From: Piromyces finnis finn
Lineage: Eukaryota > Fungi > Neocallimastigomycota
Assembly: GCA_002104945.1 (NCBI GenBank)
Contig: MCFH01000025.1
Span: 1 to 64,000 of the forward strand
Direction of reading: 5' to 3'
Length of the DNA stretch: 64,000 nucleotides
Below, piece after piece: positions 11,770 through 48,895 of the stretch. Numbering within the stretch: the first letter of the stretch is position 1; the number at the start of each line of letters is the position of its first letter. A program made the translations under genes and the position numbers. The notes below the pieces were generated by a model. The model was not told where the DNA came from, did not search any database, and saw only the letters and a list, made by a program, of their open reading frames with translations.

Positions 11770-11772
<3 letters not shown>

Positions 11773-14097: not shown

Positions 14098-14133
<36 letters not shown>

Positions 14134-16574: not shown

Positions 16575-16590
16575 AGAATTGTAATGAATA

Positions 16591-26570: not shown

Positions 26571-26617
26571 AGCAAAAATTTACTGAAATTTAAAGGGTTA
26601 GGTATTAATGAGTAAAC

Positions 26618-26670
<53 letters not shown>

Positions 26671-27085: not shown

Positions 27086-27104
27086 ATCCCCGATATCTCC
27101 ACCA
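27086..27104 (-). promoter_or_regulatory. Primer-binding site, complementary to a tRNA 3' end (probably tRNA-Ala)
   Basis: Minus strand TGGTGGAGATATCGGGGAT, 3 nt inside the 5' LTR; its complement ATCCCCGATATCTCCACCA ends in the UCCACCA typical of eukaryotic tRNA-Ala. Confidence 0.75.
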
Positions 27105-27107
27105 AGT

Positions 27108-27528
27108 TGATACGGGTTAATTTTATGTAGAAAGAATTAAACTTTAATTAATATATATATTTTATTAATAATTTTATTTATAACGTTCCAATATTTCTAT
27201 TCTGTCTAAATACTAAAACGTTCTGTCGTTGTCAAATATTAAAATTCTAACTAAAACAAGAAGCCCTTTTTAATAATATTTATTCTAGTCTATTTATACT
27301 AATGAGGCTTACTTAATAATTAATTGTCCAATTATAAGGCTGGAACTATATGGATCATTCATTTACAATACTCTTTTACATTACATGATTTTACATTTGT
27401 CGTACATTTACATTATATTCTTATACATTGTAGAAATAATTAATATTATAATAAATCTATATAAATTTAATATTAGGAAAAATTACTAATATAATAATAT
27501 GTTCAAGTCACATATTATTTTTATATCA
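27108..27528 (-). repeat. 5' LTR of outer Gypsy
   Basis: Matches 13523-13941 apart from a few small differences; followed on the minus strand by the PBS. Confidence 0.93.
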
Positions 27529-28018
27529 TAATGAAAAGATTATTTGTTAATTTTACTATATAAATTTATGAAATAATTTAGATAAATATTTAAATTAATG
27601 AATAATTAAATTTAAATATTTTAAGCATTCAAATTAAATCTTAAAAAGTTTTTATTTAATTAAAATTAGTTTAAAACTTCAAAGTCAAAGTAGTTTTAAA
27701 ATAGCATTTTTCAATAGTAATTATATAATAAATAGTATTATTAATATTAAATTAATATAGAAGTAATACATGGACTATATTCAATTTACAGTTTACTCAA
27801 ATTGAATCAAAAGTGTATCTAATTAGTTTTAGTATAGGTTTATTATTTTATTATTTATTTAAATTAGTATTAAATTAGATTGGTTTATTTTATATTAAAT
27901 ATGTATATAATTAAATAGATATATCAAATTATAATATATAAAAAATATAAATACATGTAATTTTTCTTAATAAAAACGATGTAATTGTTATTGACTACAA
28001 TTTATTTAATAACTAAGT

Positions 28019-28560
28019 TCACACAAAGGTAAAAACACTATTCTGTCTGAGAAGACGAACAATAACATCTAAGGTATTGTTCAATGACAGCATTAGTAAG
28101 CTCAATTTGTCCGTTGGATTGTTGATGATGAGCAGTAGCAAGATTTGGTTTGACTCTAAGAGCAAAGCAAAAAGAAGTTCAAAATTCAGAAGAGAATTGA
28201 GAGCCGTGATCGGAGATAATGGTTTTAGGAAAACCATGATAACGAAAAACATTTGAAAGGAGGAGTCTAGCTGTGAGATCAGCCGAAGCAATGAATTAAA
28301 TGGATCATCTTTGTAAGGTGATAAGCGACCACCATAATACATGTACAATTTTGAGAATTTTGGAGAGAAACTATGAAATCCATCCCAATGATTTCCCACG
28401 GTTTATTTGGTACAGGAAGTGGCTGGATTTTTCCGTAAGGTTTGTGGCGGCGTATTTTGTTTTTTCCACAAACCTCACATGAAAAAACGTAGTTTTGTAC
28501 GTCATTACGCATATTTGGCCACCAATAATAACGTTTTAGTTTTTCAAGGGTTTTATCAAC
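28019..28560 (-). pseudogene. Gypsy integrase fragment
   Basis: SCEVCGKNKIRRHKPYGKIQPLPVPNKPWEIIGMDFIV, LTKMIH and QYLRCY motifs across frameshifts. Confidence 0.85.
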
Positions 28561-28605
28561 CCCCTGATGACTATTGTTTATTAAATAATCTAAAGATATA
28601 TATTA

Positions 28606-29009
28606 TGATACGGGTTAATTTTATGTAGAAAGAATTAAACTTTAAATAATATATGTTTTATTAATAATTCTATTTATTACGTTCCAATATTTCTATTCTG
28701 TCTAAATACTAAAACGTTCTGTCTTTGTCAAATATTAAAATTCTAACTAAAACAAGAAGCCCTTTTTAATAATATTTATTCTAGTCTATTTATACTAATG
28801 AGATTTACTTAATAACTAATTGTCCAATTATAAGGCTGGAACTATATGGATCATTCATTTACATTATTCTTTTACATTTGTCGTACATTTGCATTACATT
28901 CTTATACATTGTAGAAATAATTAAAATTATAATAAAACTATATAAATTTAATATTAGGAAAAATTACTAATATAATAATATGTTCAATTCACATATTATT
29001 ATTATATCA
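28606..29009 (-). mobile_element. Solo LTR of the outer-Gypsy family
   Basis: Homologous to 13523-13941, more diverged; 4-bp TSD ATTA (28602-28605, 29010-29013). Confidence 0.92.
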
Positions 29010-29710
29010 ATTATATCTTTACAATATTATTAATACAAAATTAAATTTTATAATATATATGTACAATATACAATCAAAAACAATATCATTACAAGTAATA
29101 AATAATATTTTAGATTATTTAATATATGATAATGTTTAATAAGCTTATTTAAATTTTTCTTATTAGATTATAAAACAAGCTTTTATGACTTATATTCTAT
29201 GAAGATTCTATTAAACTTATATTAAATAATAAAGTTATCATTTTAGTAAATATTACTATTATTAAAAGCATTTTTTTTAATTATAGTAATTTATTTTACA
29301 TACATAATACACTATGTAATTTATTAATTTTTATTATGAAACTTTTAGTGTTGTGTAAATATTTTTGATACTAACTTTTTTTTGAAAGTATTATTTTATT
29401 AAGCTTTACATTTAGTATACTATTAAATTACTATATTATTTCTTAGTAAAATTATTCTTAAAACTTAAAAAAACTATTTTATAGAATAGTATTGTACTAG
29501 TCCTTATATTTCTCAGAAATGATTTACTCAATTTTATATATATATTAGGATTACGATTGTAAATTGTAATATAAAGCATATTCGATTTATAATTTTTTTA
29601 TTTCTTTAGCATTTATAAATCATATAAAATGAAAATTTAATAAAATCTAAATAATAATTCTAACTATTTAAATATTTAATAATCCTAGTTTTATTTACTT
29701 TTAATTTGAA

Positions 29711-31906
29711 TTAAAAGTAAATAAAACTAGGATTATTTTTTAAAGATTTATATATTGTACCATCTATACTTCTATTTAATAATAGATAAGGTTTATTAGG
29801 AAAACTATCTTGAAGTTTTATATTTGTAGCTTGACATGGATAATATATATTATCTTTCCATACACCAAATACCACAACTTCTTTTTCATTTATGTTTTTA
29901 AAGTAATGATATCCTGAAATCTCTTTAATTTCCTTATATAAAGTTGAATATGGAGGTAAGGTGTCATTAAATATATCTTCATTAATTATTGGAATTTCCG
30001 GCAATATATTAGAATATGTAGACTTCCATAAATAATACTTTTTATTAGAATCATCTGATATTTTTTTCTCTGCTATCAAAATAACTTTATCTTCTTCTGA
30101 GATAAATTGTGAAATATATGAATCTCTATTGTTTTCATCAATAATAATTATGTTATTTTTTTTGTACATTGATAATATTGCTTGTACAAATACATCGTTA
30201 ACGAAAAATAAATTAGTTTCTGGTTTTACTATATATTCATATCTATAATTTGGACGAAGGTATAACCTAGTAGTGTTCATCATAACAATTATGAATGGAT
30301 ATGAAGAATTAAAATTATAAACGAAATTATTTACTCCATATGGATATATCTTCATTTCATTATCTACGGAAAATGATAATATATTTATATTGGTATAACT
30401 ACTTTCCATTTTTAATATATTTAATTGTTTATTTAAAAACTTTTCTTTTAATATGTTTAGAAAGTGTTGCTGAGATGGGATATTTATATAAGTACTACAT
30501 TTAGAACATATTTTAAATTTCGAAAATATTTCTTCAATGTCAAAATAAATTCTATATAAATTTGGTAATTCATACCCATAAGAAATAAATAAGTTTGATG
30601 GTAATAAACCAATAGATTGTTCAACAATATTATACGATATATTAGTAAAAATAATCTTTTTTTTACTTTTAGCTTTTTTAATAGTTTTAACGCATTTAGG
30701 AATTCCAGGATTATCACCAGACCTTCTATTTTGATTTATAGTTATTGTGTACCCAGAGCCCTCTGGAGATTTATAATAATTATTATTCCATTGAACATAA
30801 GGAATATTGTGTTTGATACAATATTCTTTATCAGCAATAACAGGATAAACTTTATCGACATTCCTATAATATCTTGTATAAAATTTCCCAAATAATCTAT
30901 TATAATTTATTTTTATAGGTATTTTAAAGAATAAAGTTTTATTTTGAAAATAATTTATATGGAAATTAATATATAATAAATAAATATAGTTTAACAGAAT
31001 TTTTACTGATAAATACATATACCATTCTAGATTTTTAATATGAATTGTTTCATTATATTGTTTATGTTTATTATATAAAAATATATCTATTGAAGTATTA
31101 AATAAGTTTAAAGAATACACTAAACTTTCTTGTTTTTTTATTAAACCACTTTTTTCATTTGTATAAAGATAGGGATATAAATTATTTTCATATAACATTA
31201 AATCAAATAATTGAAAATCAATTGATATCGGGTATATTAATGTTATATCTGATGGAATAAATCTTATAAAAGTATTATCAATTGAACAATTTAAGAATGG
31301 TAATAATAAGTAAATAATGTTAGAATATGATTCTTTATCTGAAAAAGTAATTTTGGATTTTGTAATTTGTATTACATCATGACAACATTTAATAATAATA
31401 TAATTATCTACATTTTCAAGTTTTCTAAGTCTATCAAATCTTATTAATTCTTGGTTATATGAAAATGAATCAATAAAATATTTATTTACATATTGAAAAT
31501 GCTGTATACCTTGTATAAAACTTGCTATATATTGGCAATTATCAGGTAAATTTTGAGTAATTATTTTTTCATATGTTTCTTTAAAACTAATTGAGGGTAA
31601 ATTAATTGGAATATAGTATTTTGTTTTAGTTGTATCTTCTAAATAATATTTATATTTTATAGGTTCATTTTTTATTTTTTTTTCTAAATTATCATAAAGT
31701 GAAAATAATAATGATACTTTTTTTATATCTACATTAGAATTATCCTTATACTTTACTATATATTTTTCTTTGGATAATTCATTACAATCAATAATATTAA
31801 TTCCTTCAAAAAAAGAAAATACTTCATTATTAATTAATATTTCAAGTTGATATGGTAGGGCTTTGTATTTTTCTAATATTGTACGTATTAAATTTATTAT
31901 ATCCAT
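29711..31906 (-). CDS. NCLDV-type early transcription factor large subunit (vaccinia A7/VETF-L-like), 731 aa
   Basis: Intact intronless ORF. Ordered segments LFDLMLYENNLYPYLYTNEK, LFGKFYTRY..YPVI..NNYYKSP..GY..NQN..PGIPKCVK and GLLPSNL..LYRI follow the conserved core of A7-like proteins as I recall it (YSR..P.I..Y.CP..YPG..N..PCC, then G.LP..YR.G), with most Cys lost. It lies head-to-head with a D6-like gene. Confidence 0.62.
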   Translation of the reverse strand: MDIINLIRTILEKYKALPYQLEILINNEVFSFFEGINIIDCNELSKEKYIVKYKDNSNVDIKKVSLLFSLYDNLEKKIKNEPIKYKYYLEDTTKTKYYIPINLPSISFKETYEKIITQNLPDNCQYIASFIQGIQHFQYVNKYFIDSFSYNQELIRFDRLRKLENVDNYIIIKCCHDVIQITKSKITFSDKESYSNIIYLLLPFLNCSIDNTFIRFIPSDITLIYPISIDFQLFDLMLYENNLYPYLYTNEKSGLIKKQESLVYSLNLFNTSIDIFLYNKHKQYNETIHIKNLEWYMYLSVKILLNYIYLLYINFHINYFQNKTLFFKIPIKINYNRLFGKFYTRYYRNVDKVYPVIADKEYCIKHNIPYVQWNNNYYKSPEGSGYTITINQNRRSGDNPGIPKCVKTIKKAKSKKKIIFTNISYNIVEQSIGLLPSNLFISYGYELPNLYRIYFDIEEIFSKFKICSKCSTYINIPSQQHFLNILKEKFLNKQLNILKMESSYTNINILSFSVDNEMKIYPYGVNNFVYNFNSSYPFIIVMMNTTRLYLRPNYRYEYIVKPETNLFFVNDVFVQAILSMYKKNNIIIIDENNRDSYISQFISEEDKVILIAEKKISDDSNKKYYLWKSTYSNILPEIPIINEDIFNDTLPPYSTLYKEIKEISGYHYFKNINEKEVVVFGVWKDNIYYPCQATNIKLQDSFPNKPYLLLNRSIDGTIYKSLKNNPSFIYF

Positions 31907-32344
31907 TTTGATTTTAGTTCAATTCTTTACTATATAATTAATATTTTCTAATTCACAAAATATATATTTTTTGTAAATTTATTCTAAACAAAAATTTAAT
32001 ATATAATTTATAATTTGATAGGATAATAAAAAATTGTTAATATGAATTTAATAACTTTAATTGTGATAGTATCAGAATTTAATTAGTTAAAATTTGGGTT
32101 TTTAATATTTACTATATTTATAGTAATTTATTATTACGAAGTATTACAAATATGTATATATATAGCTTATACTACATTATTAATACATTATTAATACATT
32201 ATGTTAAATGTATTAAAGATTATTAGAATATTTAATTTTATTATAAATCTTAAATATATTCAATTAATTAAAGTTTATAATAAAATTAAGAAATTCTAAA
32301 AATCCTCAAACCTGATTTCATTATGAAATTCAATGTTTGATGTA

Positions 32345-32484
32345 TAAATAAAATAAAATAAAATAAAATAAAATAAAATAAAATAAAAAAAAAAATAAAA
32401 TAAAATAAAATAAAATAAAATAAAATAAAATAAAATAAAATAAAATAAAATAAAATAAAATAAAATAAAATAAAATAAAATAAA
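32345..32484. repeat. (TAAAA)n microsatellite
   Basis: Direct inspection. Confidence 0.95.
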
Positions 32485-33749
32485 CGGAACATAATTTTAA
32501 TGAAAATAATAGAAATAAATATATGGAGATGATATTTTTTTTTCTTCTTGAACGTAATTTAAGTCTTTTATAATTAATTCGTAAAATCACTATCATTTAA
32601 ACCTTAATTTTCGGATATAGATTCTTTGATAATAAATTGGAATACATTAATTCTAAAATATATGAAGACTTTAGGGTTAATATGATGACACCATTAAGTC
32701 TTGACTAGTTGTCTTGGTAAGAATGGATTGTTGAATTAAATCTTCAAATCTAATTTTGATGCTATTATTAATATTTGGTTCACAGGTACCTATTACATTT
32801 TCTTCACTGCCTGTTGTTATGATTCTTTATTTGGATATTGATACCAGATTTTGTCAATTATATTCTTCTTATTGATTTTTGTTGATATCTTTTGAAAATA
32901 GGACTTTATCTAAAATATCTCAGTAGCATTAACCCATGGATTGTACCATAACCTTCAAATATACATAAAGATTTGTTTTTCAATATTATCGACAAAATGT
33001 CCGAACATTGTATTAATTTTTTCGAAGTACGAGCCATTTGTACAAGCTTTAAAGTTTTTCCATCTTTTCCTATGCAGATTAGGTTATTATAATATTAAAT
33101 TCTTATAATATTTATTATATAATTTATATCACATGAAATACCATATCATATGATAAATTATGTATATATTAATGTGAATAAACAATTATACCTAGGCCAC
33201 CATAAATAAAATCTAAATGCCACATTGAATTTTTTAACATTAATTAGTACATTATATTAATAAATAAGGTTATATACTTTATTTAATTTTATAAAAAATA
33301 TTAATTTTAAATTATTAATCAAATTTATTAAATAAACACATAAAATAATTCAAAATAATCATATAACAACGTGACCAAAACTTATTGAGGCGTAAACATT
33401 TCACAAGATAAAAAAAAATTAAGTGAAAAAACACAAATTTATTTTATTAATTTAAAATTTAAATAATTATAATGTAAATTATGTTATGTAAATAATTTCT
33501 TTTATTTATATTTATATTTATATTATTATATTTTTATTATACTTTAATAAATATTTTTATATTTTTTATATTAGTTTTATATAGATTGTTAATTAAATAA
33601 ATAAAGAAAATATATATATTTTTATTTCATGTATTTATTTTTTAGCTTATTTTATAATTAACTGTCGAAGTAATATTTTTATTAATAAATTAATTTTAAC
33701 TATTAATAGATTTAATTATTCCTAAAAAGGAAAATATATGTGATTTATT

Positions 33750-35280
33750 AAATTTAAATAAATATATTATTTTAATTTATTAATAAACTTTATATATTAT
33801 AAAAAAACATTATTAAAAAATGACCAAATTTTGAATATCTTTTTATAAGTAAAATAACTAGATTTATTTATTTGAATTTAAGGCATGATATATACTTTAT
33901 TAATTATTTTAATTAAATTATATTATTATATTCATAAGGAATTTTATGACTATAATAATATTTATGTTTATTACATTTTCTATTTTTATTTATTAATAAA
34001 CAAACAAACTAAAATTTAACTACTTAGTTTATTTGTTTATTTATATGAATTTAATTTTAACAAAAATTTTAATATATCCATAAATTGATGGATGATATAC
34101 ATATTTGAAAAAATTAATTTATTTTATATTAGTATAAAATAAATTAATATACTAATTAATCTTATGTATTATAAAAATATAAAAACCCAAAATATAACTT
34201 TTGAATTTTTCTTGTAGTAAATAATTGACTAAGTTTATTTATTTAAATTTTTAAGAAAATATAGTATTAAAAATATTTTATCATATTCCTTACTTTTATT
34301 TAATTAATTATTTATGTTTTATATATTTTCTACTTTTTTATACGAAGATTTAATTATTAAGTTTATTTACATATTTCTTACTTTATGAATTGATTCTAGA
34401 CAAAAATTTAATATATCCATAAATTGATAGGATAATAAACAATTAAAACATTTAATATAGTAATAAACTTTATATATTATAAAATATTTTAAAAGAAAAA
34501 GTTCAGAATAACTTTAAATTTTCTTTCGTAATAGATAATTGATTCAGTTTATTCCGTTTATGTTCAAATTTTTATGAAATGATTCTAGACAATAAAAAAT
34601 TAATATATCTATAATTTGATAGGATAATGAATAATAAAATAATTAATATAGTATTAAACCTTGTATTTTATAAATACTATTAAAGAAAAGTCCATAATAA
34701 CTTTTAAGTTTTCTTTTGTCATTTATTCAAATTTATAAGATATTTTATAATTTTTATTTATTAATTATTTTAATGCAAATTATATTATTATATTCCTAAA
34801 ATATTTTATTTTACTTCCTACATTCTTTTATTTAATTATATTTATTATATTTTCTCTTTTTTATACGAAAATCCAACTATTAAGTTTATTTGCATGTTTC
34901 ATACTTTATAAATTGATTCTAGACAAAAATTGATAGGATAATACGCAATTAAAACAATTAATATAGTAATAAACCTTATGTATTATAAATATTATAAAGG
35001 AAAAGTCTAAAATAACTTTAAGTTTTCTTTTTGTAATAGATAATTGACTCGGTTCATTTATTTAATTTTATATGAATTGATTCTAGACAAAAATTTAATA
35101 TATCCATAAATTGATAGGATAATAAACAATTAAAAAATTAATTAATATATTAACTTAAAATGAAGTAAAGACTATAAAAGAAAAGTCAAAAACAATTCCG
35201 AGTTTTTATATTTTTTTAGTAAACAACTTTTTAAAGTAAAATAATATAATTCGGTTCTTTTATTCAGATTATAGGATTTT
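33750..35280. repeat. Degenerate tandem-repeat array with core GATTCTAGACAAAAATTTAATATATCCATAAATTGATAGGATAATAAA
   Basis: Core starts at 34392, 34581, 34915 and 35079, with variants near 34045 and at 31981. A higher-order ~520-bp duplication relates ~34275-34760 to ~34800-35280. Confidence 0.85.
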
Positions 35281-35444
35281 ATCTTGTTAGGTTTAATCAT
35301 AATATTTATACTAAAATTTAATTGTTAATTTTATTTCCTTATATCTAAAATAATTTACTAAATAAGTTTATTTCTTCCTTTTGCCTAAAACTTTCATCAT
35401 CATCATCATCATCATAATAATAATAATAATAATTAGTTTTTATT

Positions 35445-38400
35445 ATGTCTTATCCCGATATTAATAAATTATATAACTATCGAGAATTTAAAGAAATATT
35501 TACTAATGAAAATTTATTGGAGGAAAAACTCCATATGAAAAGATATCAAATATTACCTTCTAGGTATATGTCGAGTGATAATGAAGCTGTTAAAAGATTT
35601 TTAATCTACCATCCACCGGGTTCAGGAAAGTCATATACTGCATTATGGATACTGCTAAACTTTATAAATTTTTATGAAAAACCAGCTATTATCCTTGTAA
35701 AGAATAAAGAATCGATAATAAATTTTAAAAGTCGTATTGAATCATGGTATTCATTTACATTTAACTTTTATAAACCTCCAGAAGGTATAACAAATTATCA
35801 ACAATTTATAAAAAAATATATTGAATTTTATACATATTTTTCATTTTTCAAATCTATAAAAAATATAGAGGATATTAAAATGCATGAAAATAGATTTATT
35901 ATTATTGATGAGATACATAATTTTCGAAATACTAAAGAAAATAAATTTATATATAAAAGAATTAATAAATTCTTAAGTTCTATTAAAAATGCAAGAGTAA
36001 TATTTATGTCAGCAACACCGATATTTGATAACTATAATGAAATATCAAGTTTAATAAAATTAATAGTACCAACTATTAATAATAATACTGATTTTACTCC
36101 CAAAAAAGTAGAAGAAATAATGAAAGGACACGTATCATATTATGGATTAAATCCGCCAGATACAATTGTTAATTATAATGGTAAGTGTATTCAAGGAATT
36201 AATAAATATAAAATATTTGAAATTCCTATGAAAGGATTCCAACTTCAATATTACCAAAATTTAACCAAAAATGTTAAGAATTTAAATAGTATGGAAATGG
36301 GAATTAATTTAACGAAAGCAGCTATTGGTGTTATTGATTTTAATAATTTTAAATTAAATATTCCCCATGATACTAATAATGAAAAAAAACGTTATATATT
36401 CAAAAATGGTCATATCATTTATAATGATATAGAAATTCAAAAAACTATAATAAAGCATTCAGAAAACCTCAGTGATTATTGTTGTAAATTTTACCATTGT
36501 CTAGATATTATTAATAAGGCTAATTCATCAGATGGTCTTGTTTTTATATATTGTAATTTAATAGAAGATATCGGTATATATTATTTTGCAGCACTACTTT
36601 GCTCTATGGGATATAATTATGTATATGATAATAAATCAGCAAAGCGATTTAGTAAAAAAAAATTTTTAGATAAAGAATTTGATTACCCAGAATTAAAAGA
36701 AATAAGAAGAGGTAATAAAAAAAATAAAAAATGGAATTTTACATTTATTACAGGTGATAAAAGATTATGTCCAAATGTTTTAGAGCGTTTAGATATGTTT
36801 AATAACTCTAATAATAAAGATGGCTCAGCAATCAAAGTACTCATAGGAAGTGATATATTGTCAGAAAGTGTTGATATTTTGAATGTACGTCAATTACATA
36901 TATTAACACCCCATTGGAATTATGAGAAAATAAATCAAATTATTGGACGTGTTCGTAGAGTAGGATCTCATATGGCGTTACCCCCGGAACAAAGAAATGT
37001 TAATATATATTTATATTCAGCATATGATCCAACAAAACAATATTCAGATTCTATTAACTATAGTATTGATTATTTTAAATATATAAAATGCGAAAATAAA
37101 TATAATCAATCATTACAATATTATAAGGCATTACAAAATGCTTCAATAGAATCATTAGTTATTAAGAATTTATCAAAAGATCACAATCTTAAAAGTTCTC
37201 AATATTCTCATTTATATATAGAAAAAAAATTACCAATATATCTTTCTTTGATGTGTAACTATCTAAAAACAGCTTTAGATTCATCCGATTATGTTAATAT
37301 TAACGATATAATAAAAGAAGTACCTGTATTAAATATATCCATTATTAAAGAAATAATAAAAATTATCAAAACAAATAACATTATAATAAATAATAGAATT
37401 TTAGATTATTCATGTGGATTAATGTATTTGAAAATGACATCAAATCTTCGTATTCACAATGATACTAAAAATCCCACTAATATAAATCCTTTAATTTACT
37501 TACTTGATCATAGTACAAATTCATCTAAGTCGCTAACGTCAGGTTTTAATAATAGTGGAGTTTTGAATAATGAAAATAAAAAAGATATAGAAATAGAAAA
37601 TAAAACTAATACTTTAGAACATTTACTAGAAAATAATTTAAACAAAGAATTTTATAATATTATATTAAATTATTCACACACAGAAATACTTGAAGTTATT
37701 AAACATAGTTTAAAATATAATATAAAGAATATTAAGTATTTCTTTAGTCCTTACTGGTTAAAATATGATGATTTATTTTATATATCATATATTTCAACTA
37801 TAAAAAGCAATTCTTATTCTAATAACAAGAATAAGTCTATTACTGACTTTAATAATATAATTTATTACAGTGATAAATCATTTAAAGAATGGTCAATCCT
37901 AAAAGATTCTGAATTGAATAAAATTTCTAAAATAGTTCAGAAGCATTATAAAGAAGAAAAATCAAAGAGAATTAATAATAATAAAAAATTTGCATTTATG
38001 TTATGCAATGATTTCATAATTCGATATGTTGATTCATGCAAAAATGTTTGTAGTAATGAAACATCTAACACTAAAGATTTGCGAAATTCTAATCGTGGAA
38101 GAAGTGTTTATAACTTTGGTAATAAAAAAGAATTAATAGAAAAGCTAATATGTTCGATGTGTTTTGATGATAATGAAAAAAAATTACATCAAATTGAAGG
38201 TTATAGAATTATTACACCAGAAAATATTTTAGAATTAAATAAAAATAACAATGAAGATACTACTAATTTAATGAATCATATAATAAAAATTATTACAAAT
38301 AATAATTTAGAAGAATATTGTTGTAAAAGACCACATCAAGCATTTTTAATGTATAAATTATTCTGTTTATTACCAAATTTACTCAAAATGACGAAAGATA

Positions 38401-38459
38401 ATATTATTGAAGAATGGAAAAAGTATTTATTTAAATATAATTTAATAGTTATTTTATAA
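35445..38459 (+). CDS. NCLDV-type SF2 helicase/NTPase of the D6/D11 family, most likely VETF small subunit (D6-like), 1004 aa
   Basis: Intact intronless ORF: LIYHPPGSGKS (Walker A), IIIDEIHN (DExH), FMSATP (motif III), ESVDILNVRQLHILTPHWN..QIIGRVRRVGSH..LPPEQRNVNIY (motifs V-VI in D6/D11 style), and a long C-terminal extension with NRGRSV..KKELI. Confidence 0.85.
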   Translation: MSYPDINKLYNYREFKEIFTNENLLEEKLHMKRYQILPSRYMSSDNEAVKRFLIYHPPGSGKSYTALWILLNFINFYEKPAIILVKNKESIINFKSRIESWYSFTFNFYKPPEGITNYQQFIKKYIEFYTYFSFFKSIKNIEDIKMHENRFIIIDEIHNFRNTKENKFIYKRINKFLSSIKNARVIFMSATPIFDNYNEISSLIKLIVPTINNNTDFTPKKVEEIMKGHVSYYGLNPPDTIVNYNGKCIQGINKYKIFEIPMKGFQLQYYQNLTKNVKNLNSMEMGINLTKAAIGVIDFNNFKLNIPHDTNNEKKRYIFKNGHIIYNDIEIQKTIIKHSENLSDYCCKFYHCLDIINKANSSDGLVFIYCNLIEDIGIYYFAALLCSMGYNYVYDNKSAKRFSKKKFLDKEFDYPELKEIRRGNKKNKKWNFTFITGDKRLCPNVLERLDMFNNSNNKDGSAIKVLIGSDILSESVDILNVRQLHILTPHWNYEKINQIIGRVRRVGSHMALPPEQRNVNIYLYSAYDPTKQYSDSINYSIDYFKYIKCENKYNQSLQYYKALQNASIESLVIKNLSKDHNLKSSQYSHLYIEKKLPIYLSLMCNYLKTALDSSDYVNINDIIKEVPVLNISIIKEIIKIIKTNNIIINNRILDYSCGLMYLKMTSNLRIHNDTKNPTNINPLIYLLDHSTNSSKSLTSGFNNSGVLNNENKKDIEIENKTNTLEHLLENNLNKEFYNIILNYSHTEILEVIKHSLKYNIKNIKYFFSPYWLKYDDLFYISYISTIKSNSYSNNKNKSITDFNNIIYYSDKSFKEWSILKDSELNKISKIVQKHYKEEKSKRINNNKKFAFMLCNDFIIRYVDSCKNVCSNETSNTKDLRNSNRGRSVYNFGNKKELIEKLICSMCFDDNEKKLHQIEGYRIITPENILELNKNNNEDTTNLMNHIIKIITNNNLEEYCCKRPHQAFLMYKLFCLLPNLLKMTKDNIIEEWKKYLFKYNLIVIL

Positions 38460-39574
38460 GTACTTAAAAACAATTTTTTAAACAAAAAAAATCTAAAAAC
38501 CATTGATAGATTAATTTCTTCTTTTTTATTTATGTATAAAAAAAAGAAAGAAGATGTATTTAAATTTAAATTCATTAAATAAATAAATTAAAAATTTCTA
38601 ATTAATAAATAATTTACTCACTATCATTACTTCAAGGGTAAAAAATCTCTTTTTTTTTAAAACATAATTTGGTTTGGAAAGAGATAAATTTTAGTTACTA
38701 TGTTAAGTGTTAGTAATTTTTTTTTCTTCAACTTTATTATTTTATATACATTAATGCTTTATTTCGTTTTTTTAATTATTTCTTTGATGGTATTTCATTT
38801 TTCTTATTTATATATTATAATAGTAATGCTTTTTTATTTAGCTTGAAAATTTCCAAGGTTATTTGGTTATTTATTTATTATAATTACCATCATTATTTTG
38901 AACATTTATGAGAGTATTTGTAAAAAAAGGACTTTTATTTACCTATATTACCTATATCATATATTTATAAACACACGTAACTAACTTATTGATATAAGTT
39001 TCTTTTATGTTGTAGTAATTTAATATTAGTTTATTTATAATTTATTATATTAGGTGAAAAAATATTTTATTACTATTAACTTCTCTCTTATTATTAATTT
39101 CACTTATAATCTTTTCTTATCAATTATTAAAACTCTTCTCTCATTATTAATTATTTTTACATGGATATTTTTATATTATAAAATTCCTATAATTGAATAT
39201 CAATTATATAATGTAATGTATTTATAATATATGAATAATAATTAAATAGGATATAATATAATATATTTTACATTTTATATGAAATATTACTATATAAGGA
39301 AAGGTAATGTAATACAAATAAGTATTACAATAAAATTAATACTAATATATAATATTAATATTTAAGAATATAATGAAATATGTACATGAATTCTATAACT
39401 AATATATAAATAATGTATTATAATATATATCAATTATTATATTATTATTATGAAATATTATATATAAATTTTTAAATATGAAATTGAATATTTTAAATAA
39501 AAAAATTATTTTAAATATGGCTAATATGTAGCTAGACATATAAATTTCATATCATTATTGATACTATACATCTA

Positions 39575-39735
39575 CATTATTCTTTTACATTACATTTTTA
39601 CATTAGTCATACATTTGTATTACATTCTTATATATTATAGAAATAATTAATATTATAATAAAAACTATAAACTTAATATTAGGAAAAATTTGCTAATATA
39701 ATAATAGGTTCAAGTCACATATTATTTTTATATCA
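39575..39735 (-). mobile_element. Truncated, diverged LTR remnant of the outer-Gypsy family
   Basis: tattaggaaaaatt..ctaatataataata.gttcaagtcacatattatttttatatca matches one end of LTR 13523-13941. Confidence 0.85.
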
Positions 39736-40329
39736 TTATAAAAATATAAACATGCATTAAAAGAAAAGTGTTTTAAACATAATGACTACGTGTTTTAGAG
39801 ATAGTTATTTTTTATTTATTATATTTTATATGGTCACATAACCTTATATCTTATTATATAACTGTAATATTTACAACATAACTTTTTCTCTTTGTTAACC
39901 ATAATAATAAAATTATTTATTAATTAAATTTATTTCACAATTATTATTATTATTATTATTATTATTAAATTACACATTATATTTGTTAAATAAGAGAATG
40001 TAAAAATACTCTTATTAAGTTATAAATAAATTATATAAGAAAAAAAACTTTTATAAATAAAATACTTTTACAATATGTAAATTATAACGATTTCATATAA
40101 ACTAATATTATAAATAATTAAATTATTAAATATTAATTATATTTAATTTTAATATTTATTTATATATATATATTTATTTTATTATTATTACAATAATAAT
40201 GCAAAATTATTTAAACATTCTTTATTGCGTAATTGATAATATTATTATATAGTTCATATTTATTAATTTATTATTATAAAATATAATATTAATAACGATA
40301 ATAATAAAGTAATTACAAGAACTTATTTT

Positions 40330-40977
40330 TTAGAGTTCTTGATTCTTTTTACTATCTTCTATCTTCTTTTGAATCTTTTCCAACTTTTTTCTTCTTCTAT
40401 CTTCACTATCTTTTCTTCTTTTTTCAATCTTCTTGGCGTAATCTTCTTTATCAGCTAACCAATTAGCTTTATTTTCTTCACTATCAACAAGTTCATAAAA
40501 TGAACCATTTTGCATTGCTTTTTGTAAAGCAAAACTATTACCAAAGAATTTACCATTAACAAAAATAAATGGGAAGGTTCTTTGGGCAGTCATTCTAAAT
40601 AAGGCATCTCTAATAGCAACTTTACGAGCTTCATTTCCAATATTGTTTAAATTTAGTAGAATAAAAATTATAAGATATGAATATTACATATTTAAAAAAT
40701 TATAAATTTTCTTATTTAATTTCAGAAAAATATATATTATCTCATTTATTATTATTATTTAAAAACTAAGTAAAAGTATACTTACGTTCGGCATCTACTT
40801 CCATAATACCATATGGAACTTTAGATTGAGAAATAGCTAAACGGGTAACTTTGCTTCTTCTGTTAACATTAATAATTATTTTAAATATTTAAATTAATAT
40901 TCATTAAATTAATTTTATAACACTATTTTATATTTAAGATCTCTTGTCCCTCCCCTTCTTCTTTCTTTCTTTCTTTC

Positions 40978-41008
<31 letters not shown>

Positions 41009-41578
41009 CACTTACTCATCATTTCCATCAATAAATAAAACTACTTGTTGTTCTAAACTAAATTTTTTAACTAATTGACCAACAGGTTCTTCCATATATT
41101 CTTTGACTTTTAATAAATCTGGTCTATTCTTGAGTCTTTCATAAGTTCTTTCTTCCTTAAGAATATCTTTAAGGAATGCTTTTTCTTCCAAAGTAAGAAC
41201 ATTATCATACATGTCTAAATTAATTTCATCCTCTAATTTTTTTTGAATATCTTTATAAGCAGAATGATTAGCTTCATTATATTCTGTTACAAAAACCTTT
41301 TCAGTGGTAGGTTCATTAATTGATTTATTTAATAAAATTTCAATTTTTTTTGAATATAATTCTGGTTGGAATTGCTTTAAATAGAGAATAAAACCACCAA
41401 CAATAACTGAGGCAGTAATAATGACAGTAATTAAAAATTTTATGCAATGACAACCACAATTACCACAACAACCTTTACAATTTGATTTTTCAATCTTTTT
41501 TTCAGTTGAGGTATTGTTTTCTTGAATTTCAGAAGGTTTAGTTTCCTTCTCTTTAGTATTTCTTTTGTTTACTGCCAT
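40330..41578 (-). CDS. Membrane-anchored glutaredoxin-like protein, 3 exons (41578-41016, 40859-40786, ~40630-40330)
   Basis: GTAAG donors at 41015 and 40785; spliced C-terminus IRDALFRMTAQRTFPFIFVNGKFFG resembles the Grx TVP/GG region; one hydrophobic helix (FLITVIITASVIVGGFILYL); no CxxC. The third-exon acceptor is ambiguous. Confidence 0.72.
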
Positions 41579-41666
41579 TCTTTTATATATTATTTCTAAA
41601 ATTATTTTTTAAATAATTTCTAATGTTATTTATTACTTATCTTTTATTTATCTATCTATCTATTTA

Positions 41667-41697
<31 letters not shown>

Positions 41698-42422
41698 ATT
41701 TTTATTTTTATTTTAATTTCTATTTTTATTTTTATATTTATTTTTATATTTTTATTTTTTTATTTTTATTTTTTATTTTTATTTTTTTATTTTTATTCTT
41801 ATTTTATTTTATTTAACCTATTTTTTTTATTTCGATCTGAAATATTTTATTCTTTTACTTCTGTCTATTAATGTATTAGAAAATATTAAAAATAAAGTTC
41901 ATATTGAGATTGTTATTAATATTTTTTTGTAGTAGAATAATGTAATGTAATTATATTAATAATAAAAAGTAGCAATAAAAATCTTCAAAAATATCAATAT
42001 AATTATAACTTAATAAAGAAAATTTTAATATAATAAAATCTTAAATAAATATAAATTGGTTTTTTAATTTAAAAATCATTTATTAATAAGGTTAAAAATT
42101 AATAAATCATATGATAATATAATTAAAGATCTATGTAGACACTACGTTTAAATATTTATTATATTAATCACATATGTACATAATATATATTATATGTATA
42201 TAAATAAGTGTTTATAATTTGTATTTAATATGTTAAAACCTTTTTTTTTTTTTTTTTACTTTATTTTAAATATAATAAATAAGAATCATAAAAGAACAAT
42301 GAAACAACGCAGTAACAATAAATAGAATCTTTTAACATAACAATTATAAATATAAATAATTTAATATATAAAAAAAATTCTTTAATAACCGACACAAAAA
42401 TTTAATATATATATACTTTTCA

Positions 42423-42457
<35 letters not shown>

Positions 42458-42472
42458 TCATAAATACATATA

Positions 42473-42919
42473 ATGTCTGATTTTAATTTTGATATTACAT
42501 ATCAAACAAGCGGAAATAATTATAGTTATGGAAAAAGTCCTTTCAGACAAATCCAATATTATTTAACTAACAGAATTATAGGAAAATATAGTAAATCAAT
42601 ATTTATTGATGGATTTATAAATTTTTTAACACAACATATTAATTATTCTGATATATCTTATGATGATGAAAATAATGAAAATCGATTTAGTAATTTGAAT
42701 GTTAAAATGTTATATTTTGTTTATATTATTAAAACATTTGAGTATCCAGATTTAAATGAAAATGACTTAATTGATGCTGAACATAAAACCGTAATTAAAC
42801 CTATATTTGAAGATATATTACAAATAAAGGATCCTGAAAATTATGAAGATTATTTTCTTGATATTATACGTTATCTCACTATATTTGATAAAATTATTAA
42901 TGATGATTTTATTATTTAG
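42473..42919 (+). CDS. Intronless 148-aa acidic protein of unknown function, possibly viral
   Basis: Clean ORF in otherwise nearly pure A/T DNA, with coding-like composition; ends ..FLDIIRYLTIF.. Confidence 0.6.
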   Translation: MSDFNFDITYQTSGNNYSYGKSPFRQIQYYLTNRIIGKYSKSIFIDGFINFLTQHINYSDISYDDENNENRFSNLNVKMLYFVYIIKTFEYPDLNENDLIDAEHKTVIKPIFEDILQIKDPENYEDYFLDIIRYLTIFDKIINDDFII

Positions 42920-43563
42920 TAAAATATTATAAAATTTTGATTTTAAGTATAATATATATATTCTATTTTTTATTTTTATTTCATTAAACTCATTTCAATA
43001 AATAAATTGTTTATTATTTACTTAAATTTCGAAATTGTGGATAGAAATTGGTATTTATTTTAATACTTATTTATCTTTATTTACTTTTTAACAAGTTCAT
43101 AATGATTTTAATTAATAAAATAAATGTATTTATTGTTAATATAATTCAAAATTAAAAAATAAATTAATTCTTTAATTTTTATTTAATAATAATAGATATA
43201 AAATATATCTTGTCATAAAATATTTATAATATTATATATATATATATTTTATTATTATTATTATTATTTTATCAATTAATTCTTAAAATTGCCGAGACAA
43301 ACATTTATTGAAAATTGTTTACTACCGTTGGAAATATCTTTTTTTTGAAGAGATATAATAATGAAATTTCAAAAGAAATGAATTTTGGTTTTTTATTTAT
43401 AGAATTATTTCCGCTCCTTTTATTAATTATTACTTTTTCTTTTCAAAATAAAGAATTAAATATTTTTGTGTAATTGATGGTTATTAATATTTTTGTAAAT
43501 TTATAATGCATAAACAATGTTTATAATAATAATGATAATAACAAATAAAATAAAATAAATAAA

Positions 43564-45729
43564 TTAAGGTTCACAAGACATTGAGTATGCATACTCTAAG
43601 AAAATATCGTCTATATCTAACATATTGGAAGCAAATGGATAGTAATGAATTTCTTTGTTATTAAGATCATGAACAATGCCATTTTCATCAGTTGTTAAAT
43701 CTTCCATACATTTAACCAACTCTCTTTGTAAGTATCCAATAGAAGATGTATTTAAAGAAGTTGATATAATTCCAGCACGTCCAGATTTTGAGTGAATAAA
43801 TAATTCTTTTGATGATAGACCTTCTGAATAAGAACCTTTTATATATAAAGATGGTAGAACAGCTTGAAATCCAACTGCTACTAAGATTTGTGATATATTT
43901 TCTTTACTACCTTTGGAACCACTATTTACAATATTAGTTAAATTATTGTCAATTGAGCCAATTATTTCTGATAAAGAAAAATGTCTATTAACATCTTCAT
44001 TTGATAAATTTGTTTGACTTAAAATATTATTTTGATCAAAAATTAGTGAATCAATACTTGATAAAGGAACATCCGTTGCATTATTAGATATATTATCTAT
44101 TATTGGTTTAAATGAAGTTTTCATATTTTCATTAGCTATACAATCAGCAATGGAAATAGTAATTGTGTGAAATAAATTATACTCATGGACCATTTGTTGA
44201 ACATTCCACATAAATTTCAAGTAAAAATCATTACCATAATTACTTATTGCATTAAGTAGAAGTGTTTGATTATTACCATTAATAACCCCTAACGAAATAC
44301 CACGATCTATAATTAACTTATTATTATGTTTTAAAGTTAATGTTTTAGGAAGTAATAAAGATAATAAGTGTGCATATGGAATATTTGTTGTATTCATTCT
44401 TTCATTATAAAATTCACAAAATTTTATCCATTCTTTAGTTGAAATATTAAGTTTTTTACATATTCTTTCAATGATAAAGGAATCAACAATGTGCGTATCC
44501 CTTGTCATATTATATAATCCTGTTAATGTATCTTGTATAAATTTAATCATTATAGAAGCGTCTTTAAATGATCGAATATTATTTGATATATTTAATTTGG
44601 TTGCCAATTCTTTTTTTGCTTCTATTCCCGGAAGCCAAAATATATTCATCTCATCACCATCAAAATCTGCTTGAAAAACATTTGCTATTAATGGGTTGAT
44701 TTGGATTGTACGACAATTACTTGGAAAAGAACGAATTGCTAATATTGACGTAGATTGAAGTGTAGGTTGTCTATTGATAATGACATAATCATTTGGTTTA
44801 TAGCCAAAAGAAACTAATCTATCAGTAAACTCTTTTGGAATTAATATTCTATCAATAGGGGTATCTATATTTGGCACAATTACACTACGTAAACAAAAGT
44901 TTTGTCTTTTTGATAAGCACATGCTTCTAAATATTCCCTTTTTTCCGGATAATAATTGTTTAATATAATTTTTATTTGTAGTTTCAATTTTACCTGTTGA
45001 ACATTTCATTCCTAATACTTTTTTATATAAATTATACACTCTTAGTGAATAACTATTATTAATATTTTCATCATTTTGATATTTTTGATTTAAATCAAAA
45101 AATTTTAGATATAATGAAGTAATGTTATTATGCAATATTACATTACTAGAATCTACTATAGATGGTCTCATATTTATTGGTAAAATTGGAATATTTTTAA
45201 TAAATACTCTAAGTAATTTAGATTTAAGTCCAGGATTGTTACTAAAATCTGAATTATAAATTTCTTTATACATATCTTCTACTGATATTTGTTTGTTTCC
45301 AAATGAAAAAGCATATTCTGATTCTTGAGGTTTATTAGACTTTTTGTTTTTATATTTATTTACTTTTTTTTCGTTATCGTTTTTGTTTTCAGAATTTGAT
45401 TTAAATAAAGAAAATGTTGTGGATACTATTTTTTTTTTACAGCAAATTGACTTTACATTATTTGAACTATCATATTTTTTACAAATGGGACAAATGTGCG
45501 TTATTTCTTTACACAAAGTATTCACGAATAAAGGATGAACAATTCTTTGAAAAAGGGGTATTCTTCCTAAATGGCCTGGACATTCAATAATTTTCTTACA
45601 TTGTCTGCATGGTAACTGAGGATTAAGTGTATATGAAGTTGTGTTGTCAATTAATTCGTCTTTATTATTTATTAAAATCGCTTTTTTTTCAAGTTTTTCA
45701 TCATCATATAATTCAAATTTTAAATGCAT
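43564..45729 (-). CDS. Streamlined multisubunit RNA polymerase largest subunit (RPB1/beta-prime N-terminal part), virus-like, 721 aa
   Basis: Zn clamp CRQC..ECPGH and CPIC; LSGKKGIFR; RSVIVP; NRQPTL; catalytic QADFDGDEMN; SGSKGS..NISQI; bridge helix GRAGIISTSLNTSSIGYLQRELVKCMEDL; no introns, no heptad CTD. Confidence 0.93.
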   Translation of the reverse strand: MHLKFELYDDEKLEKKAILINNKDELIDNTTSYTLNPQLPCRQCKKIIECPGHLGRIPLFQRIVHPLFVNTLCKEITHICPICKKYDSSNNVKSICCKKKIVSTTFSLFKSNSENKNDNEKKVNKYKNKKSNKPQESEYAFSFGNKQISVEDMYKEIYNSDFSNNPGLKSKLLRVFIKNIPILPINMRPSIVDSSNVILHNNITSLYLKFFDLNQKYQNDENINNSYSLRVYNLYKKVLGMKCSTGKIETTNKNYIKQLLSGKKGIFRSMCLSKRQNFCLRSVIVPNIDTPIDRILIPKEFTDRLVSFGYKPNDYVIINRQPTLQSTSILAIRSFPSNCRTIQINPLIANVFQADFDGDEMNIFWLPGIEAKKELATKLNISNNIRSFKDASIMIKFIQDTLTGLYNMTRDTHIVDSFIIERICKKLNISTKEWIKFCEFYNERMNTTNIPYAHLLSLLLPKTLTLKHNNKLIIDRGISLGVINGNNQTLLLNAISNYGNDFYLKFMWNVQQMVHEYNLFHTITISIADCIANENMKTSFKPIIDNISNNATDVPLSSIDSLIFDQNNILSQTNLSNEDVNRHFSLSEIIGSIDNNLTNIVNSGSKGSKENISQILVAVGFQAVLPSLYIKGSYSEGLSSKELFIHSKSGRAGIISTSLNTSSIGYLQRELVKCMEDLTTDENGIVHDLNNKEIHYYPFASNMLDIDDIFLEYAYSMSCEP

Positions 45730-47773: not shown

Positions 47774-48895
47774 CTAATATTTATATTTTTTAGTGATAAA
47801 AACGATCAATCCTATATAAAAATTAATCAAGGAACGCGTGTTTACTGATGCATTCCATTGTCCTTGTTTAACCATTGAATATGTACAAAGGTAACCATTA
47901 ATTAAACCAGTAATCCATTCTTTTTCTTTACCATAACAACGAATATAGAATAAATGCGTTAAAGCAATATTTGAAAGAATAGCTGCTGTCCATTTCCAAG
48001 TATTGAACGATACAAACTTGTAATTAAAACCACCAATAATGAATCGATAAAAAATATATCTAAACATTAATTCTTCAATAATTGGAATAATGAAACAAGA
48101 ACAAAAAAAACGAATGATATTAATAAACAAAATCTTTACGGTATTATCGAAATGATTTTCTGGATTCCATAATAATTTATCATTTAATGCATTATCAGTG
48201 TTACATTGTATTGTTTTTTTTATATTATATTTATCTTTTACAGACAATGTTTGATGATTTTTAGGTTTAATAGAATCTTGTATTAAATTTTTTTGACTTT
48301 TTAATATTTTTTTGTTAGTTTGATATAAACTATTACTTTTTGGGGTATATAAACATTTATTAAAAGAATTTACTTGAATAATTGGATTATCTAACCATGG
48401 TTGGCCAAAAATAATAGCAACAATAAATCCAACGATACTATTTTTAACAGAAAGTTTGGAAGGTATCCAAAATTTTAAGGTATAGACATCAGAGATTTCG
48501 GGAATCAATTTCTTCGAAATAACTAATATTAAAATTATATAAATAAAGTATATAGCAAATCTTGTATAATAGATATAAAGATTTGAAGTATCTTTTATAT
48601 TTGATATTTTAAAAATTAAACAATCTTTCAGACAAATTTTTATTTTATTAGGCTTATTATTATTTTCTTCCTTAGAATTATTATAAAGTTTATTTGATGA
48701 TGTATTAGTAGTTGAGTAATCCTGATCATTATCATTATTTTTTAATTCATAGTCATCTTTCTTTTTTGACTCTTTACTTTTTATATAATGTTTATAGTTT
48801 TTTAAATTTTCAAATACACCGCCAATATACAATGAAAGTGGAATTGATAATACAAAAGGAATCACTATTAATAATAAATTAAGTATTTCTATCAT
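47774..48895 (-). CDS. CPBP/Abi (CAAX-protease-like) intramembrane protein resembling the bacterial PEP-CTERM-associated type
   Basis: Intronless multi-TM ORF; IRFFCSCFIIPIIEELMFRYIFYRFII (EExxxR), ALTH, and RSLIN at the usual HxxxN position. Confidence 0.7.
   Translation of the reverse strand: MIEILNLLLIVIPFVLSIPLSLYIGGVFENLKNYKHYIKSKESKKKDDYELKNNDNDQDYSTTNTSSNKLYNNSKEENNNKPNKIKICLKDCLIFKISNIKDTSNLYIYYTRFAIYFIYIILILVISKKLIPEISDVYTLKFWIPSKLSVKNSIVGFIVAIIFGQPWLDNPIIQVNSFNKCLYTPKSNSLYQTNKKILKSQKNLIQDSIKPKNHQTLSVKDKYNIKKTIQCNTDNALNDKLLWNPENHFDNTVKILFINIIRFFCSCFIIPIIEELMFRYIFYRFIIGGFNYKFVSFNTWKWTAAILSNIALTHLFYIRCYGKEKEWITGLINGYLCTYSMVKQGQWNASVNTRSLINFYIGLIVFITKKYKY

Follow-up and report, generated by a model that had tools for sequence, protein, structure and literature searches.

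We analysed positions 1 to 64,000 of contig MCFH01000025.1 (749,539 bp; assembly GCA_002104945.1) of the anaerobic gut fungus Piromyces finnis, a stretch referred to below as the window. The segment from 29.7 to 50.5 kb is very probably an eroded, rearranged and non-autonomous chromosomal relic of an element resembling nucleocytoplasmic large DNA viruses (NCLDVs), of the type described as 'fundsalphaviruses' by Gong et al. (2020). Compact relatives of about 42.3 kb, described below, provide the reference for its gene content. The relic keeps five of approximately 20 element genes, namely those for a protein resembling the large subunit of the viral early transcription factor (VETF-L), a superfamily 2 (SF2) helicase, the N-terminal subunit of the RNA polymerase protein RPB1 (RPB1N) and two small core proteins, and fifteen genes have been lost without trace. 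The five genes are as follows:

29711–31906, minus strand: putative VETF-L-like protein, 731 aa, intact, no breaks (fold match to VETF-L)
35445–38459, plus strand: predicted D6/D11-family SF2 helicase, 1004 aa, intact, no breaks (Pfam and Protein Data Bank matches)
42473–42919, plus strand: small core protein, 148 aa, homologue of p145, intact (tblastn, 42% identity, E 2e-28)
43564–45729, minus strand: predicted RPB1N with an archaeal A'/Rpo1N-like split, 721 aa, intact, no breaks (Pfam and Protein Data Bank matches)
49879–50463, minus strand: small core protein, 194 aa, homologue of p194, intact (tblastn, 63% identity, E 3e-73)

The open reading frames (ORFs) of 731, 1004 and 721 aa each run from an ATG to a stop codon with no internal stops. 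In 200 first-order Markov simulations of the region 26001–51200, the longest stop-free stretch expected by chance had a mean of 92 codons and a maximum of 144, so that all three ORFs lie far above chance. An earlier note on this DNA, made from the letters alone, had reported three intronless ORFs of these lengths without breaks, and their coordinates and reading frames were confirmed. The ORFs of 148 and 194 aa were absent from that note and were found by tblastn of the proteins of compact relatives against the window. Since both come from the same element, the relic extends to position 50463. The start of the 194-aa gene was set at the ATG aligned with its relatives, the mechanical ORF beginning at a TTG at 50496. 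The window's own annotated NCBI gene models on MCFH01000025.1 are truncated.

All five ORFs match the compact element, at 42–66% amino-acid identity. Remnants of the family B DNA polymerase (PolB), the D5 primase-helicase, RPB2, the C-terminal RPB1 subunit (RPB1C), the capping enzyme and TFIIS were not detected in the 64 kb by tblastn, even at E ≤ 5. Compared with the compact element, the relic genes stand in another order and orientation, and their spacers measure 0.6–4 kb as against approximately 0.2 kb. Two host-type genes and one fragment of a long terminal repeat (LTR) are interleaved among the relic genes. The absence of a DNA polymerase gene from the window, stated in the earlier note, was borne out by the lack of any PolB remnant, and the partners which that note had listed as still to be found (RPB2, RPB1C, the capping enzyme and PolB) do not occur within the 64 kb. 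Its description of the genes as an intact module did not hold, because RPB2, RPB1C, the capping enzyme, TFIIS and the upstream motif of the lineage are all missing from the window. With these other genes and the promoter motif missing, the locus cannot transcribe or replicate anything alone, and it is not a reactivatable provirus.

The identification of the 731-aa protein as a VETF-L homologue is supported by its predicted fold only. No Pfam family, Pox_VERT_large included, matched any of 12 family members at E ≤ 1. A sequence search of the Protein Data Bank (PDB) returned nothing, and a family-profile search of the PDB at E ≤ 10 returned noise only. When the profile was run against 1.84 billion proteins, relatives were found only in anaerobic fungi, and scanning the VETF-L alignment and RPB1N against IMG/VR yielded no relative. 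The AlphaFold model has a pLDDT of 63, with values of about 85 for residues 1–320 and below 70 for half of the model. A fold search of the PDB with this model gave 7amv_K, the vaccinia VETF large subunit, as the top match (E 2e-4, 473 columns), followed by chains of the TATA-binding protein. The search of BFVD gave 61 matches at E ≤ 1e-3 (best 1.7e-12), with VETF-L-like proteins of NCLDVs heading the list and accounting for most of it. The top BFVD entries are annotated as 'early transcription factor large subunit' and come from pitho-, marseille-, irido-, asfar-, mimi- and entomopoxviruses, the single best match being a Pithovirus protein. The protein shares 55% identity with its compact-element homologue and 62% with a gut-metagenome copy (contig L004). 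In the compact elements of three fungal genera, the VETF-L-like gene is located between the TFIIS-like gene and RPB1C, two genes away from the helicase. The earlier note had named this protein VETF-L, and the call is supported by the PDB and BFVD fold matches, with no match at the sequence level. A stretch of about 118 bp on the 3' side of the VETF-L stop codon (29593–29710) can be aligned to the metagenome contig L006; the sequence upstream cannot.

The 1004-aa protein is, judged from its sequence, a D6/D11-family SF2 helicase. Pfam recognised the domains ResIII, DEAD, SNF2 and Helicase_C, and found no NPHI_C domain. In poxviruses, VETF consists of the small subunit D6 and the large subunit A7, and nucleoside triphosphate phosphohydrolase I (NPH-I) corresponds to D11. 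The only strong relatives with solved structures are vaccinia NPH-I and the small VETF subunit (VETF-S), with E values of 2e-20 and 1e-7 for the single sequence and of 1e-19 and 2e-7 for the family profile. Helicase motifs I, II, III and VI are kept (G59-T60-G61-K62-S63, D155-E156-x-H158, S189-A190-T191 and Q498...R502...R505, respectively). The structural model is poor (mean pLDDT 51) and matched 7amv_W, the VETF-S chain, at 3e-6, followed by NPH-I at 1.6e-5. As to the choice between D6 and D11, the sequence favours NPH-I, and the fold ranks VETF-S slightly first from a model of low confidence. The compact-element lineage encodes a single D6/D11 helicase. Of the earlier identification as VETF-S, the D6/D11 family stands, but the subtype is not established: the sequence is nearer to NPH-I (1e-19 versus 2e-7), and the model has a pLDDT of only 51. 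A scan of JGI metagenomes with the helicase alignment retrieved only helicases of 21–36% identity; seven contigs were checked and had no other gene in common with the element.

The 721-aa ORF encodes, according to its domain architecture, the N-terminal subunit of a naturally split RPB1, a state which is normal for the lineage and does not reflect truncation of a gene. Rpb1 domains 2, 3 and 4 as well as positions 1–53 of domain 5 scored above the Pfam cut-off, and domain 1 was weak. The best PDB matches are archaeal Rpo1N (A') chains (2e-35), which end at the same split point. The catalytic loop residues D355, D357 and D359 are kept, as are the zinc ligands C41, C44, C50 and H53 and, in addition, C80, C83 and C96. 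RPB1C is a separate gene of 354–513 aa in relatives. The partners RPB1C and RPB2, which are needed for an enzyme, are absent from the 64-kb window and are present in compact relatives (439 and 1074 aa, respectively). The earlier note was right in naming an RPB1-type subunit, whose catalytic loop is intact, but the C-terminal half which it listed among the partners to be sought is a gene of its own in relatives. The archaeal Rpo1N (A') chains, which are the best PDB sequence matches and have the same end point in Rpb1 domain 5 as the window protein, resemble it in architecture only; the polymerase of this lineage grouped with NCLDVs in the trees of Gong et al.

Neither the p145/p148 nor the p194 family has a Pfam or PDB match. 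In all compact copies the p145 and p194 genes lie beside PolB and D5, the p145 gene adjoining PolB. The p148/p145 family is kept in the P. finnis contig-83 copy L014 and in L016, and the p194 family has 84 invariant columns across four lineages.

Relatives of the window genes were reached by exact-protein look-ups in assemblies of public sequencing runs. Compact units were recovered as contigs of 42,285–42,490 bp with 85–89% coding sequence in dozens of runs, among them SRR25667292-326, SRR18693153 and SRR14695932. Their gene order is p227, p282, helicase, p268, TFIIS-like, VETF-L-like, RPB1C, PolB, p145, p194, D5 primase-helicase, RPB2, an 808-aa capping enzyme/methyltransferase, RPB1N, p207 and p469, followed by large proteins. 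The TFIIS-like product is a zinc ribbon, and PolB consists of the domains DNA_pol_B_exo1 and DNA_pol_B. Among the large proteins, the second last carries a B-lectin domain and the last ricin-B and chitin-binding domains. Cargo proteins bearing these three kinds of domain were located at 17677–22820 of L010 and at 4771–7600 of L017. Such lectin and chitin-binding cargo recalls, by analogy, the chitin-binding killer-toxin subunits found in the virus-like elements (VLEs) of yeasts. Compact contigs from different runs have equal size and different start points and bridge each other's ends, which indicates that the unit is circular or tandemly repeated. All genes are intact in the units L001, L007, L010 and L040 (Logan assemblies of SRR18693153, SRR25667315, SRR25667310 and others). 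Ten core genes differ by 2 nt between two unrelated runs (SRR18693153 and SRR14695932), and this pair of runs therefore carries no selection signal. Neither a capsid protein nor a packaging ATPase was recognised in the compact unit by the weak methods applied, which for the capsid were Pfam at E ≤ 0.1 on all proteins and PDB phmmer searches with the 469- and 723-aa proteins.

The same compact gene order was found in P. finnis contig 83 (two copies), in Neocallimastix 'constans' and in Anaeromyces robustus. The two contig-83 copies (L014 and L015) lie approximately 54 kb apart and share the same helicase interruptions. In L014, four of 11 genes are interrupted: p227, RPB1C and PolB once each and the helicase twice. 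P. finnis contig 62 (L044) holds an inverted duplication of a partial copy, and many further partial, rearranged or duplicated copies of the element occur in the same genome. The nearest relatives of the window genes, with 62–71% amino-acid identity, are encoded by gut-metagenome contigs (L004–L006) with sparse ORFs and about 20% GC, which also look chromosomal. A transposon-derived segment of the window (10522–11123) is 72% identical to positions 1866–2467 of L006, and this segment in common suggests that L006 comes from a related fungal chromosome. A 28.5-kb environmental contig from JGI sample 3300078620 encodes a split RPB1 (694 and 354 aa), RPB2, PolB, D5, an SF2 helicase, an XPG nuclease and DUF5757, as well as a 719-aa ORF without Pfam match beside RPB1N; it points tentatively to a broader clade of NCLDV-like genomes of small size. 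The giant-virus type proposed in the earlier note is therefore retained as far as the NCLDV-like origin of the genes is concerned, but the relatives are compact elements of about 42 kb and not giant genomes.

An unbiased k-mer count covered, for each of 20 genes of the compact elements (L001, L007 and L010), the 150 nt upstream. The hexamer AATGAT was present in 14 of the 20 regions (2.7 expected) and AAAATGAT in nine (0.6 expected). In 13 of the 14 AATGAT-positive regions a copy lies 40–105 nt before the ATG, and the density of the motif upstream of genes is 8.5 times that in the rest of the element. This A-rich, TGA-containing motif (AAATGAT and variants) precedes most core genes and is missing before most cargo genes. 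It is retained in the P. finnis contig-83 copies. In the window, no copy was found within 150 nt upstream of any of the five genes, and in two of these upstream regions there are microsatellites. Promoters of yeast VLEs (the upstream conserved sequence, UCS; 5'-ATNTGA-3') and early promoters of poxviruses are AT-rich, contain an invariant TGA and are proposed binding sites for the VLE helicase or VETF (PMC6211774). Because the compact-element motif resembles these TGA elements, VETF-like initiation in the compact elements is a reasonable inference by analogy. By the same analogy, with poxvirus VETF and the helicase of yeast VLEs as models, the compact elements' helicase and VETF-L-like protein would bind the upstream motif, and the motif-bound pair would recruit the element's own polymerase. 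The relic's products may work in trans together with other resident copies, of which there are many, or may have been co-opted by the host.

The relic is set in sequence of the fungal chromosome, and the following host features lie within it or bound it:

39566–39747, no strand assigned: LTR remnant, host (87% identity to the LTRs at 13496–13944, 27107–27531 and 28578–29010)
approximately 40333–41581, minus strand: glutaredoxin-like membrane protein gene, intron-bearing, host-type (NCBI model of 311 aa, weak PF00462 match)
47774–48895, minus strand: putative Rce1-like CAAX protease ORF, intronless, 373 aa, apparently host-type (weak match to Pfam PF02517, 7.6e-5)
51207–61584, plus strand: TEL1/ATM-type kinase gene, host, bounding the relic (ORFs of 1582 and 1816 aa; TPR_ATM, PI3_PI4_kinase)

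The glutaredoxin-like model spreads 311 aa over 1249 nt and therefore holds an intron. Its first exon encodes a predicted membrane helix and its last exon the C-terminal part of the glutaredoxin. It has no counterpart among the compact-element proteins by tblastn, and the Rce1-like ORF, positioned between RPB1N and the 194-aa gene, did not match them either. The LTR remnant belongs to the family of the outer LTR pair of the nested structure upstream, and the reverse transcriptase (RT) and RNase H of Ty3/Gypsy type sit in the inner element, which has different LTRs. GC content is 0.11–0.17 in the spacers versus 0.20–0.25 in the ORFs, the region as a whole having about 20% GC, and the spacer microsatellites include arrays of (AAATA)n, (AAT)n and (TTTATT)n. 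Most of what the earlier note had said about these surroundings agrees with the present data: the spacers are AT-rich and bear short tandem arrays, the intron-bearing glutaredoxin-like gene between the viral ORFs is backed by the NCBI model and the weak PF00462 match, and the genes are embedded in a fungal chromosome, inside the 749-kb contig between host transposons and TEL1. The LTR remnant itself is real, but its ascription to the Gypsy family holds only loosely, its family being that of the outer LTR pair.

Downstream, the relic is flanked by the TEL1/ATM-type kinase gene, and upstream by a long interspersed nuclear element (LINE)-like element and nested LTR elements. The LINE-like element (7388–12499) encodes an endonuclease and an RT. 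The nested structure spans 13496–29010. Its outer LTRs (13522–13944 and 27107–27531) share 99.3% identity; those of the Ty3/Gypsy-type element inside it (17279–17703 and 23269–23697) share 93.6%, and this inner element has its RT at 20114–20740 and its RNase H at 21177–21521. An additional LTR copy is found at 28578–29010. Positions 1–5555 of the window, 24 kb away from the relic, form an inverted palindrome whose arms share 90.9% identity over 5.6 kb; it has the look of a hairpin artefact of long reads at the end of the contig.

The state of preservation of the relic genes was compared with that of their relatives. No interruption occurs in the 2,798 codons of the five ORFs, and catalytic and zinc motifs are intact. 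The compact, motif-bearing copies in the same genome look younger and, unlike the window ORFs, have interrupted genes. VETF-L deviates in 6 of 98 otherwise invariant columns and RPB1N in 1 of 96, without rate acceleration of the latter; Tajima relative-rate tests against the compact-element homologues were not significant for either protein (p > 0.1). Pairwise dN/dS is 0.14–0.35 for four genes, and dS against every available relative is 0.7–1.6. Host, relic and compact-element genes are not distinguishable by GC3, the pooled compact-element GC3 being an approximate background figure. No orthologous locus was found for the relic among the available relatives. Because the ORFs are full-length, the motifs intact and two of the three large genes unaccelerated, we lean towards the view that purifying selection after integration has kept the five ORFs; we give this an even chance and hold it somewhat likelier than neutral decay of a young relic.

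Several observations weigh against the identification and the selection argued for here. The assignment of VETF-L comes from the fold only, with low TM-scores of 0.15–0.25 for the matches and a weak C-terminal half of the model. In relative-rate tests against compact-element homologues, the helicase carries 1.5–1.8 times more private changes (p 1e-5 to 7e-3), and it deviates in 37 of 266 otherwise invariant family columns. The 148-aa gene has a pairwise dN/dS of 0.62, which, together with the acceleration of the helicase, fits a partial relaxation of constraint. With dS at 0.7–1.6, the dN/dS values are not assignable to the time after integration. The contigs L004–L006 are not collinear with the window and have no flanking gene in common with it, and the orthology of their genes to the window genes is therefore unproven. 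The protein collection contained no second sequence identical to the window proteins and hence no evident transcript-derived copy, which is a weak negative. Finally, the 13% divergence of the LTR fragment may predate its insertion, which leaves the residence time undated.

The most serious rival is that the locus is a young viral fragment decaying neutrally, with too little time for stops to arise and with gene loss, rearrangement and spacer growth proceeding fast at or soon after integration. We consider this rather unlikely, although it agrees with the many partial, rearranged and duplicated element copies in the same genome, with the accelerated helicase and the dN/dS of 0.62 of p148, and with the want of an evident transcript-derived copy of the window proteins in the protein collection. 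It is in line, too, with the premature stops and frameshifts reported by Gong et al. for endogenous elements (PMC7017919) and with a later preprint which calls such elements NCLDV pseudogenes. However, every sign of age except decay of the ORFs is present. The five upstream motifs are gone and the fifteen missing genes have left no trace, two host-type genes and a 13%-diverged LTR fragment have come to lie among the relic genes, the compact motif-bearing copies already have four of 11 genes interrupted, and VETF-L and RPB1N show no increase in rate. Beyond preservation by selection as such, the five ORFs may form a host-embedded viral transcription set under selection which acts in trans on the 42-kb elements, either helping them or, being incomplete and decoy-like, restraining them. 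Such a set would comprise the VETF-L-like protein and the helicase as a pair for promoter recognition, a single polymerase subunit and the two small core proteins. This proposal is slightly less likely still than a young neutral relic. If true, it would represent domesticated NCLDV machinery in a fungus, and the 42.3-kb units would be a minimal, capsid-poor replicon of NCLDV type still existing in anaerobic gut fungi.

The remaining explanations are very improbable. A latent functional provirus or episome with its own early-transcription machinery ready would agree with the intact ORFs and catalytic motifs and with the intact compact relatives in sequencing runs, but it is contradicted by gene content: the 64 kb contain no RPB2, RPB1C, capping enzyme, TFIIS, PolB or D5, the relic genes lack the upstream motif, their order is scrambled, and they are interspersed with host genes and an LTR remnant. 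We give just as little credence to an assembly chimera or contaminant, in which viral or episomal reads would have been misjoined to a fungal chromosome. The assembly reportedly derives from error-prone long reads, and the first 5.5 kb of the contig form an inverted palindrome typical of a long-read artefact. Nevertheless, the relic has host sequence on both flanks inside the 749-kb contig, the LTR between the element genes belongs to the family of the three upstream copies, composition and GC3 match those of host genes, and independent metagenome contigs show the same dispersed layout beside a transposon family which they have in common with the window. Integration of a cytoplasmic linear plasmid of yeast type (a pGKL2-like VLE) is similarly hard to credit. 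Both kinds of element have a D6/D11-like helicase, an RNA polymerase of their own, a capping enzyme and a TGA-containing upstream element, one weak match of RPB1N is a fused beta/beta-prime protein (P0167), and the compact unit bears chitin-binding and lectin cargo. Yet the compact unit encodes a PolB with the domains DNA_pol_B_exo1 and DNA_pol_B as well as a D5 primase-helicase, seemingly unlike the protein-primed VLE polymerase; it has a separate RPB2 and a split RPB1 instead of a reduced fused polymerase, and a VETF-L homologue is present. Moreover, compact units are circularly permuted, not linear with terminal repeats, and a survey of VLEs recorded none in zoosporic fungi except one Kappamyces contig. 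The readings as cellular paralogues and as a yeast plasmid were both rejected on gene content.

To our knowledge DNA viruses of fungi are almost unknown, and the anaerobic fungi of the gut are important to herbivores for breaking down fibre. With this locus, the endogenous NCLDV-like elements of P. finnis gain a type of insertion which is DNAP-less, lacking the DNA polymerase gene (DNAP), and which had not been screened for before, and a putative VETF-L homologue is identified in the fundsalphavirus lineage. Should the 42.3-kb units replicate freely, few NCLDV-like genomes with their own polymerase would be smaller, and the units would bear on the kinship between yeast killer plasmids and giant viruses. 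The survival of intact ORFs where the rest of the site has eroded offers a concrete, testable case for fungal co-option of viral transcription proteins.

The structures that best match the 731-aa protein and the helicase, 7amv_K, 7amv_W and 6rfl_Y, belong to the poxvirus early transcription system (7amv, 6rfl), in which early promoters are AT-rich with a TGA, as is the upstream element of the compact relatives. In contrast, identity is only 10–19%, and neither Pox_VERT_large nor NPHI_C is matched. Poxviruses have two D6/D11 helicases and the fungal lineage one, the fungal RPB1 is split, and the window has neither a polymerase core nor the motif.

Yeast VLEs (pGKL2; Sykora et al., 2018, PMC6211774) resemble the compact elements in being AT-rich and compact and in encoding a polymerase of their own, only one D6/D11-like helicase and a capping enzyme. 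The VLE helicase is proposed to bind the TGA-containing upstream element, and chitin-binding cargo is found in VLEs and compact units alike. Unlike the compact elements, VLEs are linear, have terminal proteins and a reduced two-subunit polymerase, and lack VETF-L and D5. The distance to the ATG is 20–40 nt for the UCS in VLEs versus 40–100 nt for the motif in compact elements.

The endogenous giant-virus elements described from other eukaryotes (for instance Physcomitrella, Euglena and Acanthamoeba) consist of core genes in host chromosomes, are invaded by transposons, occur in multiple copies and are eroded to varied degrees, as is the case here. They are usually tens to hundreds of kb long with many genes, whereas the source genome of the window relic measures about 42 kb. 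In addition, the relic differs from the elements so described in keeping only transcription-related genes and two small core genes, all of them unbroken.

The closest known system is that of the fundsalphaviruses. Gong, Zhang & Han (2020; Virus Evol 6:veaa008; PMC7017919) screened 1,006 fungal genomes with DNAP and described these elements in P. finnis, Anaeromyces robustus, Neocallimastix californiae, Piromyces sp. E2 and Pecoramyces and, beyond these, in other fungal phyla. The reported genes comprise DNAP, D5, a D6/D11 helicase, a SAM methyltransferase, RPB2, RPB5 and a split RPB1 (RP1n and RP1c), and in the DNAP tree the group lies near Pithovirus (PMC7017919). The compact relatives are the 'fundsalphaviruses' of that study, a name which was not found in the other literature searched; a 2026 paper on Mycodnaviridae makes no mention of anaerobic fungi. 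Of the published gene set, the window has the D6/D11 helicase and RP1n only, and the homologous compact copies hold the full set. Like the window, fundsalphaviruses are hosted by P. finnis, have a D6/D11 helicase and a split RPB1 and are accompanied by retrotransposons nearby, and some copies are broken. The published screen probed DNAP alone together with its flanks, and a DNAP-less locus like that of the window would escape it. VETF-L is not among the listed genes, and only endogenous copies were described. New with respect to PMC7017919 are the DNAP-less locus, the putative VETF-L homologue, the motif upstream of the genes, the 42.3-kb units recovered intact and permuted, and the contrast of intact dispersed genes with interrupted compact copies. 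The kind of insertion had already been published for P. finnis (PMC7017919); the preservation of its genes is unusual for so eroded a site.

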